DNA of 64,000 bases from Rebecca billardiae RCC1528 (taxonomy: Eukaryota; Protista; Haptophyta): positions 1,116,001 through 1,180,000 of the forward strand of contig OZ251226.1 of the NCBI GenBank assembly GCA_965240325.2. Direction: 5' to 3'. Under the pieces are notes generated by a model. It saw nothing but the letters and a program-made list of their open reading frames with translations, was not told the origin of the DNA and searched no databases. Positions within the stretch are counted from its first letter, which is position 1, and every line of letters starts with the position of its first letter. A program made the position numbers and the translations under genes. Positions 35,108-39,618 of this stretch are shown one piece after another.

Positions 35108-37403
35108 TCACCACACGTGCTGCGCCTCGAGGATCTTCTTCTCCCGCTTGATTTGCAGCAGGTGGTCGAACGCGAAGGTCATGAACTCCTTCGCGTCGAC
35201 CGAGCCGTTGGCGTCCGCGTCGACCATGCCCATCAGCGCGTAGATCTCGTGCCGCTCGAGGCCGAGGTCGGCAGAGCGCAGGCACAGCTCAAACTCGTTC
35301 TCGTCCTGCGTGCGCGCGCGCGTGCGTGCCGGCCGTGCGTGAGTGCGTCGGTCGGTGTGCGTACAGAGCTCAGCGCGCGCGGCGTGCGCGCGCGGTGGCC
35401 GCGGCCGACGGGACCGAGCGCCGAATGACGGCTGGGGGTCGCCCGCGCGCGCGCACCAGCATGGAGTTCTTGTCCACGTCGTGCTTGGCAAACGCGGTCG
35501 CAAACTCGGCCTCCATCTGCGCGCGCTCCTTGCCGTTCATCAGCTCGACTGGCGCAAAGTCGGCGCGCTCGAGCATCCGCGCGCGCTCGGTGAGCGACTC
35601 GGGCGTGCACAGCGCGCGGAGCATGCGCGTGACGACGGGCACGACCTTCTCGTAGATGATGCCGCCGTCCTCCTCCATCGGCGCCATCGCGACGATCGTG
35701 TTGGCCTGCATGCGCGAGAGAAGCACGACGTCCTGCGACATGAGCACGTCGACCATGCGCGTGCGGTAGAGCACGCCCTTGCCCTCGTAGTCGCCGGCGG
35801 CGAAGAGGTCGCGCACGCTCTGCTCGAGCTCGTCGAAGCCGACCACGCGCAGCTCGTGCTTGTAGTACTCCGTCAGCACGTCCACCATTGCCGCGGAGAA
35901 CTCGTCGAAGCTCAGCTGGCCGTCGCCGCTCACGTCGAGCGAGCTCATCACGAGTCGTACCTGCTTGGCGTTCAGCCCGAGCCGGGCGTCGCGGAGCACA
36001 GCGCGCAGCTCCTGCCGCGAGAGCTGGCCCGACTTGTCCGCGTCGTATAGCTCGAACGCGACGCGCGCGATCTCGATGACCTGCGCCTTGGGCATGCCGT
36101 TCACGAGCGCGCTCGCCGCCGCCTCCACCTCCGCGCTCAGTCGCTGCTCCTCCGCCTGCACCCGGTGCCGCGTGCGCATCGCCTGGATGACGTCCGTGGC
36201 GATCGGGATGAACTCGGCGTACGACACCTTGCCGTTGCCGTCCTCGTCGACCTCGGCGAGCAGCCGCTGGATCTCCGAGGGCTTGAGGCCGAGCGCCGCC
36301 GTGCGCATCAGCGTCTTGAACCTGCGCAGGGGAGGCGGGACACGCCGGGCGCGGGCGCGGGCAGCGCGCGTGAGCGCCGGCAGGCCTGGGTGCGTGCGCC
36401 GCGCGGCGCAAAGCTCCAATCCAGCGCGCGCGCGCGCGCGGCACGCACTCGACGGCGTCCAGCTGTCCGTTGCCGTCCTGGTCCGCCTCGCGGAACAGCC
36501 GCACCAACTCCTTCTCCAGAGACTCCACGCTCGCGCCCGTGGTGCCGATCGGGCCGGCCGAGCCCGTGCGCTCGGCCGCGTCGTCGTCGTCGTCGTCAGC
36601 GTGCGCGTGGGCGGCGGTCTCGAGGTGCTCGTACCCCGGGATCCCGAGCTGCTCGGCGAGCCGCGGCTGCGTGAACCACGACGCCGCGAACGCCTGCGCG
36701 TCCGTCGGCTTCTCCTCGACGAGCGCGCACAGGAAGCCGTGGACGAGCGCGCGCAGCTCCGGGTGCGCGCGCAGGTACTCCTCATTGTTGATCCGGATCG
36801 CCACGCTCTTTCGCCGCATCTGCGCGATGAGGTTGACCTGCCGCGTCGCCTTCTTCTCCTCCTCCATGCGCGCGAGCTCCTCGGAGCTCCCGGCGCGCTC
36901 GACCTCGGCCGGGTCGGCGCCGTCCGCGGAAGCGTACGGCGCCGCCTCCGCGCCCGAGTCGGGCGCGTCATGCGGCGAGGCCGGCGGCGTCGGCTCGGGC
37001 TGCGCGTCGACGGGTGGCTGCGCGTCCGCCTCGGCCTCAGGCTGTGCGCCGACGGGTGGCTGCGCGTCCGCATCGGCCTCAGGCTGCTCTGCCGCCGCAT
37101 CCGAAGGCGTGGCCTCTTCCTCAGCTGCCGTCGCGCCTGGCGACGGCTCTGCCGCTGAATCCGCGGCTGCCGTCGGCACGTCTGTGAGCGCCTCGGTCGG
37201 CTCCTGCGGCGGGTCCACATCCGCCGCGGGCTCTGGCGCCGCGTCCGCGCCCAGCTCTGCGTCGGGCTCCGGAGCCGGGTCAGGCTCTGCGGCATCTGGC
37301 GCCGGCGTCGGTGCTTCCGCCTCGGTCACGGGCGCGGGGTCCGTCTCGGGCTCGGGCTGCGATTCGGGCTCGGGCTCGGGCTCGGGCTGCGATTCGGGCT
37401 CGA

Positions 37404-37457
<54 letters not shown>

Positions 37458-37560
37458 ACTGCGGTTCGGGCTCGGGCTGAGCCTCGTGCTGCACCGCATC
37501 GGCAGGCCCAGCCTCCGGAGCGGGCTCTGCCGCCTGGAGCGGTTCGTCGCTATCCGCCAT
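35108..37560 (-). CDS. RIIa dimerization/docking domain + multiple EF-hand protein (radial spoke RSP7/RIIAD1-like), ~724 aa; exons 37560-36449, 36321-35457, 35305-35108
   Basis: [25 protein letters not shown]...FAASWFT (RIIa-like). EF loops [72 protein letters not shown]. Acidic (PE)n N-terminus. Confidence 0.85.
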
Positions 37561-37691
37561 TGATCAAGCTCGAAACCGACGACGACCCGGCCGCTCGCCA
37601 CTTACCCATACATACCCATATGCGTTGCGCACGGTAACTCTGCCAACTTCTTCCCGCGCGCGCGAGCCGCGAGGGACGAGGTGACAAGAAT

Positions 37692-39618
37692 ATGCGGGGC
37701 GACCGCTCCGAGTCGGCGGTACGGGCGTTGCTGGAACGTGCGGCCGAGGATGGGCGGCGTCGGCGTGCACGGGTGCGAAGGCCGATGATCGCGCTCGGCA
37801 CTGCGTGCGTCGTCGTGGGCCTCCCACTCATCATCCTCGATCAGGGCTGGTGGTTCGTCAGTGAGGTGGCGTCTGTGGTGCTCCTCCTGGGTGGGTGGTT
37901 CCTGGCCTGTGCCATGGTGCCTGACGACCCGAAGTCGCCCTACTTCGTCGCGGCCGCGGTCCTGGCTGTCGAAGCCGTGCTCTGCGTCTGGGACGTGTTC
38001 AACACTCTCAACCTTTTCTCGCTGGCACGCGCCGCCGGGTGCGACGAGCGGCAAAACGAGCAGCTGCTCTCCTGCCGGCACATGATGGTGTTGCAGGTGA
38101 CGAATGTGTGGGACACATGCGTCGCGTTCTGCGCCGTTGTCATCTCGATGCACACGCTGGTGAGTCGCTGGCAGCACGGGCCTCAGCCCCGGCGCGCGCG
38201 GCGCCGAATCATCCTGCTGATGCGGTTCTACCTCGTGTCGTACACAATCGGCATCACGCTGCGCGAGCTGAGCTCGGTGGTGCACGGGACGGAGGAGGAG
38301 CGCTCGTTTGTGGCCATGATCCCCGCGTTCCTGTTCGCCGCTTTCGTGATGCTGCTGTCCGGCGTCGCCATGTCGCCCGGCGGCATCGAGCGCGTGCACC
38401 GCCGGCTCATCTCGCGTGGCCTCACAGAGGGCGCGAGCTCGGCCGCGGCGATCGCCTCACTGATCGGCGGCAGTGGGCGCGCCCCGGCCGAGACGATGGA
38501 CAGGGCTCTCGCCACACTGCGCAGTGTGCCACTCGACCGACTCGAGCGGCGCCACTTCGCACCCCCGCCACGAGCGAAGGCACGCAGGGACGCGAGCTTG
38601 CCTGTCGCGCTCTCCAGCAGGATGTCGTTAGTGGCAGGCTTGCGCGAGCGCCACTCCACCGAAGAGGGGGGCGCTGCGCTGGGCGGTCCACAGGGTTCGA
38701 GGCGTGCGAGCTCCGGAAGGCAATCCGCTATCCACCCGGTCGAGAGCGTCGAGGCCTCTCCGACGTCACCCGACCGCTCCCGTCCCGACACGGTTCGGTC
38801 CGACTCGCCGCAGTCGAGCTCGCCAAAGGGTGCGGCCTCTGTCTGCCAGCCCGCCGAGTTTGGCCGCATCGACGCGTTCGTGAGCCACAGGTGCGTACCC
38901 GCGTTGCTCGCGCGCGATCGGTGCGCGCAGCACGCCGCTCACGCACGCCTCCCTTGCTGTGTGCACGCGCAGCTGGTCGGACGACCCTGACGCCAAGTGG
39001 GCGGCGCTGCAGCGCTGGCGCGAGCGCTTCAAGGCCAAGAACCTGCGCGAGCCGACGATCTGGCTCGACCGGCTCTGCATCGACCAGGACAACATCAGCG
39101 AGTCGCTCGAGAGCCTCCCCGTCTTCCTCGCGGGCTGTCGCACGATGCTCGCGCTCGTGGGCGACACGTACACCGAGCGGCTGTGGTGCGTGATGGAGCT
39201 CGCCGTCTTCACGATGACGGGCGGCGAGGCCGACCAGGTCGAGTGGATAACGCTCGACGGCGCGAAGCGAACGGACGTCCGCGACTTCGACGTGCGGCAT
39301 GCTCGATGCACGAGCGAGGTGGACATGGACCGACTGCTCTCGACCATCGACGCGTCGTTCGAGGGCATCGAGCGCTTCAACACGACGATTCGGAAGCTCC
39401 TTGCGCGTGCGACCGCCAAGTGGAGCACGCCGCGCAGCAGCACGACGCTGGCTCCGGACTTGAGGCGAGGGACATCTACATCTTCCACGCTCGGGCTCGG
39501 GCGTGCTGGCAGCAACATCCACAGCGGCGCGGGCCGCAGTGATGACGGCAGCGGACATCCGAGCGGCTACTTGTCCCAGAGTCAGATTCTCAGGAGTGGC
39601 TCGGATTCTGCAGCATGA
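37692..39618 (+). CDS. Polytopic (~6 TM) membrane protein with C-terminal TIR-like domain, ~614 aa; exons 37692-38890, 38973-39618
   Basis: Six hydrophobic segments, then DAFVSHSWSD...IWLDRLCIDQ...LAGCRTMLALVGDTYTERLWCVMEL. The phase-2 intron restores the SHSW motif. Confidence 0.82.

Follow-up and report, generated by a model that had tools for sequence, protein, structure and literature searches.

Introduction

In bacteria, plants and animals alike, TIR enzymes tie sensing to signalling through NAD+ and to cell death; in fungi, the HET domain suffices to bring about cell death. The HET domain is a remote homologue of TIR and has a glutamate in common with it (PMC4986451; PMC9153377), and homologues of HET in haptophytes and stramenopiles were noted in 2014 by Dyrka et al. 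(PMC4986451). TIR genes of Gephyrocapsa huxleyi, the products of which have N-termini with multiple transmembrane (TM) helices and a conserved Glu, are induced early in infection by EhV (PMC12489294, New Phytol 2025); the evidence for these genes is transcriptional only (PMC12489294). Here, we describe a gene of the haptophyte Rebecca billardiae RCC1528 that lies within a 64-kb stretch of contig OZ251226.1 (hereafter the window; all positions are window coordinates, and all features of the gene are on the + strand). The locus is an intact two-exon gene for a 614-residue membrane protein, in which six predicted TM helices, a juxtamembrane segment and a long linker are followed by a TIR/HET-like domain. 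In our view there is an even chance that the protein is, in both identity and mechanism, a membrane-tethered TIR/HET-like output module with a Glu-dependent nucleotide-cleaving activity.

At the level of layout the protein resembles the G. huxleyi set, in which an extracellular region or multiple N-terminal TM helices precede an intracellular TIR-fold domain; in both cases the putative catalytic Glu is kept, and neither an NB (nucleotide-binding) nor an LRR (leucine-rich repeat) domain is present. The G. huxleyi models were superposed on the TIR domains of RPS4 and SARM1, and both are also among the best matches here. However, the G. huxleyi set was defined by an HHsearch probability of at least 50% to a TIR Pfam model, whereas the window protein falls below the HMMER Pfam cut-offs and has a HET-like βB. 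With the fungal HET proteins (PF06985; HET-E/D/R, TOL and PIN-C), the protein has in common a WxDxxCIxQ block, an R-x-W-x-x-x-E block and the remote relationship to TIR. Unlike fungal HET, which is N-terminal to NACHT-WD40 or free-standing, the domain is C-terminal on a six-helix module, and more of its relatives match TIR_2 than HET. At the start of αC the protein has the same W-x-x-x-E spacing that is seen in plant TIR domains. The plant TIR NAD+-cleaving enzymes (NADases) RUN1, RPP1, RPS4, L6 and SNC1, in contrast, share only 12-19% identity with it, have the NB-ARC-LRR part that is missing here and are not tethered to the membrane in this way; moreover, the βA motif is SHSW and not of the SFRG type, and the βB block is HET-like. 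Nor does the protein have the ARM/SAM domains, SLOG partner or Argonaute context that go with SARM1/TIR-1 and with the bacterial TIR proteins ThsB, SpbK, AbTir and SPARTA TIR-APAZ. Finally, in contrast to marine-protist fusions with H-NOX, LRR or C-type lectin domains, the window copy has only the six-helix module, with no recognisable sensor domain.

Gene structure

The window is GC-rich throughout (60-80%; 67-73% in the region of the gene), and the coding sequence appears there as two open reading frames (ORFs) in different frames. The first (37692-38990, +) begins with an ATG codon, encodes the membrane part and ends in ...GRIDAFVSH before it reads, unspliced, into the intron as FVSHRCVPALL...; the second (38959-39618, +) runs WSDDPDAKW...IWLDRLCIDQDNI...TYTERLWCVMEL. 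The two frames, and the fact that splicing restores the SHSW motif, lead us to infer a canonical GT-AG intron of 82 nt in phase 2, predicted at 38891..38972 (CACAG/GTGCGT...GCGCAG/CTGG). Exon 1, as read from the ORF and the DNA (37692..38890), carries the start codon, the six-helix module, the juxtamembrane helices, the linker, predicted to be disordered, and βA. Exon 2 (38973..39618) carries the remainder of the TIR/HET-like domain, a predicted disordered tail and the TGA stop codon (39616-39618). The codon at the junction, AG/C, encodes Ser and exon 2 continues with WSDDPDAKWAALQRW, such that splicing gives FVSH-S-WSDD, the family consensus AFxSHSWxDD that is present in every alignment. Both exons are open over the 614 codons, and the G+C content at third codon positions (GC3) is 0.83-1.00 in the folded parts, with 0.83-0.97 in the membrane part. 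The searches reported below used exon 1 (37692-38888) and exon 2 (38974-39615) separately, or the whole proteins of relatives.

Three public assembly contigs (L001, L002 and L003, from three runs of one series) are identical to the window over 37428-39018, including the intron. Since they contain the intron and no record of this stretch is marked as RNA, the contigs appear to be genomic sequence from this strain. All three end at base 39018, 46 nt into exon 2, and this shared end suggests a branch in the assembly graph, caused by heterozygosity or by a k-mer shared with a paralogue in the conserved KWAALQRWRERF. No paralogue of the gene was found within the 64-kb window.

The TIR/HET-like domain

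The domain begins on exon 1 with the βA strand motif IDAFVSH (residues 393-399; 38868..38888), which fits the family consensus CDAFxSH and corresponds to strand 279-285 of the relative P0017 as modelled by AlphaFold. Exon 2, the numbering of which is used for the rest of the domain, then contributes two blocks of different affinity. The block WLDRLCIDQ (39061..39087), which comprises βB together with the first part of the BB-loop region, is HET-like and is the site of a sub-threshold Pfam HET match; among 140 relatives with a complete domain W30 and D32 are invariant, and at least 90% of these relatives keep C35 and Q38. The βC-αC block MLALVGDTYTERLWCVMEL (39145..39201; strand 58-62 and helix 70-81) is TIR-like, with local alignments to the TIR domains of RPS4 and SIGIRR, and holds G63, R69, W71, C72 and E75, all of which are invariant in the 140 relatives. 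In all, 11 residues of the domain are invariant, and every one of them is present in this copy.

The putative catalytic Glu is residue 75 of exon 2, or residue 475 of the spliced protein, encoded by the GAG codon at 39196..39198. It stands at the start of αC, in the helix that follows just after strand 58-62, with a Trp four residues earlier (W71-C-V-M-E75), which is the W-x-x-x-E arrangement of enzymatic TIR domains. The sole match of exon 2 among PDB sequences, a weak one (E 0.31), is to the TIR domain of RPS4 and falls on ...YTERLWCVMEL, with WCVMEL aligned to WCVREL. There are good grounds, short of proof, to equate Glu75 with the catalytic Glu of TIR enzymes.

Modelling of exon 2 residues 1-153 with the alignment of 140 sequences gave a mean confidence (pLDDT) of 91.4 and a pTM of 0.82, with the elements αA, αB, βC, αC, βD, αD and αE in this order. 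The TIR superfamily is defined by a flavodoxin-like α/β fold in which strands and helices alternate (βA-αA-βB-αB-βC-αC-βD-αD-βE-αE), a fold that the domain shares. An original prediction, made from the DNA alone, had proposed a Foldseek search of the C-terminal domain as a check, and in a Foldseek search of PDB with the exon 2 model TIR domains came first, although weakly (best E 0.045); no match reached E <= 0.001, and the top of the list was held by TIR domains. Weak rows for G protein-coupled receptors (probability 0.2-0.6), obtained when a full-length relative was used in Foldseek, were rejected as noise from fusion constructs or helix bundles. That the C-terminal domain of about 160 residues has the TIR (flavodoxin-like) fold is very probable, as are its family membership and its conservation. 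As to the rest of what the original prediction had said of the domain, the motifs D.FVSH, IWLD and RLWCVMEL are indeed there, but Ser-Trp follows FVSH only once the intron is removed; the Glu of catalytic type is retained; and while the TIR-like label stands as regards the fold, it finds no backing in the Pfam TIR and TIR_2 cut-offs, neither of which is passed.

In Pfam, the family falls between two models. The gathering cut-offs are 21.3 bits for TIR (PF01582), 28 for TIR_2 (PF13676) and 22.5 for HET (PF06985). The sole Pfam match of the protein is to HET, on IWLDRLCIDQD, at 18.5 bits with 214 residues of exon 2 and 19.7 bits with 153, both sub-threshold, and it spans only profile positions 43-64, namely the WxDxxCIxQ block. 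Exon 2 alone gave no match to TIR or TIR_2; βA, which holds part of the TIR_2 signal, lies on exon 1. The complete domains of ten relatives reached at most 18.2 bits with TIR and 20.3 bits with TIR_2, all below the cut-offs. Among the 140 relatives with a complete domain, TIR_2 matches 93 (best E 7.7e-07), HET matches 88 and TIR matches 20, all sub-threshold among the ten inspected. These sub-threshold matches to both models place the family between TIR_2 and HET and formally in neither, a position that agrees with the published remote homology of HET and TIR and with the HET homologues noted in haptophytes and stramenopiles. No family among the PADLOC defence models matched either exon at E <= 10.

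A large family of protist proteins

Exon 2 alone matches 14 proteins, with E values from 8.8e-37 to 1.3e-12. A profile built from these 14 and run against 1.84 billion cluster representatives retrieved 5,544 at E <= 1e-3, of which 1,276 were at E <= 1e-30. Among the best 150 of the 5,544, most are 450-600 residues long with the domain at the C-terminus, and most have, by a crude count, 4-6 hydrophobic segments ahead of it; the complete order of multi-helix module, juxtamembrane helix and domain is common to most of them. Members were found in the dinoflagellates Gymnodinium catenatum, Kryptoperidinium foliaceum, Zooxanthella nutricula and Symbiodinium, in the haptophytes Diacronema lutheri and Phaeocystis antarctica, and in the stramenopile Bolidomonas. 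Identity in the domain is 35-58% to the first relatives found, and about 50% to the closest known relative. Searches for viral relatives gave none in IMG/VR contigs and, in BFVD, only a weak match to a TIR/WD40 protein of Tetraselmis virus 1 (E 0.16).

Homology extends to the membrane part and goes beyond a mere likeness of layout. This is indicated by hhalign, in which the translation of exon 1 matched 40 full-length relatives over residues 7-292 (probability 97.9, E 6e-13), by pairwise BLASTP similarity from TM5 onward (E down to 1e-7), and by the one-to-one mapping of the six hydrophobic segments onto the six helices of P0017 in its AlphaFold model. A word search with exon 1 returned only the read-through ORF of the window itself, and the homology of the membrane part is visible by profile comparison only.

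In other protist proteins the same domain fold is joined to H-NOX, TPR, DUF285, C-type lectin or LRR domains. Among such marine-protist fusions the fold matches with a TM-score (a measure of structural similarity) of 0.8-0.87, and some keep the TM/juxtamembrane/domain cassette. Such varied partners are what is seen with a shuffled output or effector domain. Four relatives (P0189, P0192, P0193 and P0206) carry a C-type lectin domain (PF00059) ahead of the multi-helix/juxtamembrane/domain cassette, and a fifth (P0083) carries LRRs (PF23598/PF00560) ahead of the same cassette; these lectin- and LRR-bearing proteins resemble true surface receptors far more closely than the window copy does. The best match in the whole library (P0016, 1110 residues; E 2e-122) matches the profile in two stretches and contains some ten hydrophobic segments; it could represent a double cassette, in tandem or fused.

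By sequence, then, the gene is a diverged member of a very large and already catalogued protist family. Its kind, that is, membrane-tethered algal TIR/HET-like proteins, is already known and its relatives are named in UniRef, where two of them are entered as "TIR domain-containing protein". As regards the literature, no paper was found that treats the conserved six-helix/juxtamembrane/domain cassette as a family; one broad search was dominated by work on terminal inverted repeats, which share the abbreviation TIR.

The membrane module

Six hydrophobic segments are found in a Kyte-Doolittle plot, at residues ~31-50, 55-77, 83-105, 131-155, 171-190 and 204-226. The first, predicted TM1 (37782..37841), has a hydropathy peak of 2.35 and maps to helix 2-18/9-26 of P0017. 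Predicted TM2 (37854..37922) ends in the family motif LAPLPxD, here ACAMVPDD, and is followed by Asp79, which is kept in 50 of 59 aligned relatives. Predicted TM3 (37938..38006), TM4 (38082..38156) and TM6 (38301..38369) are hydropathy segments that each map to a helix of P0017, and in predicted TM5 (38202..38261) the Trp found in 52 of the 59 relatives is Ile174. The loop between TM3 and TM4 (residues 106-130; 38007..38081) is predicted to face outward, is variable across the family and holds Cys117 and Cys128, a pair only weakly conserved among relatives. Arg-rich stretches occur at the N-terminus before TM1, in the TM4-TM5 loop and after TM6, and their positions predict an N-in/C-in topology with the domain in the cytoplasm.

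In its N-terminal half, the family is conserved mostly on the cytoplasmic side: the LAPLPxD motif follows TM2, the Trp opens TM5, a P..R.R.Q motif follows TM6, and the juxtamembrane helix, AAAxIAxLxG...A..RFR.V, is strongly conserved. In this copy the juxtamembrane segment comprises residues 248-292 (SSAAAIASLIGG...ALATLRSVPLDRLE; 38433..38567); it is conserved and predicted to be helical, and is confidently modelled in P0017, where residues 214-249 reach a pLDDT of up to 97. Of its residues, A251, A252, A255, L257, G259, A272 and R277 recur in 45-56 of the 59 relatives.

The six hydrophobic helices, the loop with two Cys residues, the Ser-rich linker (here residues ~293-385, rich in Ser, Arg and Pro) and the cytoplasmic placement of the domain were all part of the original prediction, and all are borne out, the last by the predicted topology. 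Its term "receptor-like", on the other hand, suits this copy poorly. The predicted exposed loops total about 40 residues, and there is neither an ectodomain nor a recognisable sensor domain. With so few exposed residues, this copy could sense no more than the state of the membrane, or would be a simple anchor.

Linker, tail and neighbouring gene

The Ser/Arg/Pro-rich linker spans residues 293-385 (38568..38846), with a GC3 of 0.70-0.83 and a weak codon-position signal. About 80 of its residues form an insertion specific to this copy, which is probably coding and disordered; the insertion might stem from a recent low-complexity expansion, or be partly non-coding through an unrecognised splice. 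A search for an unrecognised in-frame intron within the linker turned up no GT...AG pair with a canonical donor, and the linker is therefore retained as probable coding sequence. At the other end of the domain, the C-terminal tail is rich in Ser, Gly and Thr (exon 2 residues 150-214; 39421..39615), is not conserved in the alignment and has a GC3 of 0.73-0.77.

The nearest neighbour is a divergent gene for an EF-hand protein (35233-37560, -), the ATG of which lies 131 nt from that of the gene described here. The intervening stretch, 37561-37691, would be a bidirectional promoter region common to both genes. The neighbour begins with a long acidic PEPEPE and Ala-Pro-rich region of low complexity; its EF-hand pairs (Pfam EF-hand_7, E 1.6e-21) are found in a second frame, so that one or more introns or frame changes must be present. 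The neighbouring genes offer no functional hint.

Discussion

The features of the C-terminal domain suggest a mode of action in which it would serve as a membrane-tethered output module. A membrane or ligand cue that acts on the helix bundle, or local concentration alone, would gather the copies, and their TIR-like domains would self-associate. The Glu would then cleave NAD+ or a related nucleotide, and the outcome would be a small-molecule signal or a depletion of NAD+ that leads to stress, defence or cell-death responses. A Glu-dependent NADase step is the most likely chemistry, although we would place it a little short of an even chance.

Several points weigh against a membrane-tethered module with Glu-dependent nucleotide cleavage. 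In animals, TIR domains that act purely as scaffolds are numerous. The grounds for equating Glu75 with the catalytic Glu are motif spacing, the position in the secondary structure and one weak alignment (E 0.31). The protein has no match to Pfam TIR, TIR_2 or HET above the curated cut-offs, profile searches of PDB sequences with two family profiles and one relative returned nothing significant, and βA, lying on exon 1, was assessed through the proteins of relatives only. This copy also departs from the family at well-conserved positions (W174 to I, R232 to I and F276 to L), and about 80 residues of its linker have no counterpart in any of the 59 aligned relatives. Moreover, a 2025 review lists the biochemical activity of the HET domain as not determined (PMC12881547).

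One alternative is a domain that is not an enzyme at all. A non-enzymatic scaffold would assemble homotypically, as in TLR/IL-1R/MyD88, and recruit the TIR/HET-like proteins of the genome to the membrane, with the Glu in a structural or interface role; the scaffold TIR domains of MyD88, IL-18Rβ, TRIF, TIRAP and TRAM score equal to the enzymatic ones in the fold searches, and adaptor-type signalling has been proposed for HET (Dyrka et al.; PMC4986451). We nevertheless consider a scaffold unlikely, because none of 140 diverged relatives lacks the Glu or the Trp that precedes it by four residues, as is typical of enzymatic TIR domains, and because the Glu is lost from scaffold TIR domains, among them SIGIRR, the alignment with SIGIRR matching WC and not the Glu position. 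The HET-like βB raises a different possibility, in which the domain is a death or effector domain of the HET type with another chemistry. A site for a different substrate would be made up of the Glu and of the Asp, Cys and Gln of WxDxxCIDQ; candidates are the conversion of RNA or DNA to 2',3'-cyclic nucleotides, NAD-capped RNA, and the glycosidic bond of a nucleoside or nucleotide (compare 2'-deoxyribosyltransferase/DNPH1, which is structurally related). This, too, seems improbable to us: TIR domains top every fold list, the βC-αC block closely copies the motif of plant TIR NADases, and nothing in the analysis indicates a particular alternative substrate.

It could also be argued that the locus is a decaying or mis-modelled paralogue, either a copy that is drifting or one with a transcript other than the two-exon model. 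The altered N-terminal positions, the unique insertion of 80 residues in the linker with its weak codon-position signal, and the distance to the closest known relative (~50% identity in the domain) would all be in line with drift. Against this, however, both exons are open over 614 codons in a region of 67-73% GC, the folded parts have a GC3 of 0.83-1.00, none of the 11 invariant domain residues is lost, the intron has canonical ends and its removal restores the family motif exactly, and the N-terminus aligns with that of the family. Decay or a wrong model is therefore very unlikely, and a membrane-tethered TIR/HET-like output module with Glu-dependent cleavage is the reading that we retain.

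That the domain is expanded in microalgae, as had been predicted, is supported by the 5,544 cluster representatives and by the members in haptophytes, dinoflagellates and stramenopiles. The proteins are, as also stated then, functionally uncharacterised, but the novelty is less than was implied, given the naming in UniRef, the 2014 report on HET and the 2025 report on Gephyrocapsa. For the same reason the single locus adds little, the domain being named in UniRef and multi-TM TIR genes having been reported in Gephyrocapsa in 2025. A Glu-dependent activity of this family would also bear on the biochemistry of fungal HET. In a broader and rather doubtful scenario, the combination of six helices, juxtamembrane segment and TIR/HET-like domain would constitute membrane-embedded immune or cell-death switches found across protists. 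The helix bundle, which has no ectodomain, would sense viral entry or budding, or a change in lipids, ions or voltage, and would trigger assembly in the cytosol and an NAD+-derived signal or NAD+ depletion, with an antiviral or bloom-terminating role in haptophytes and dinoflagellates. Virus detection and death decisions in marine algae shape the collapse of blooms and, if the scenario is true, these proteins would represent a class of membrane-embedded switches distinct from the single-pass receptors of the TLR type.

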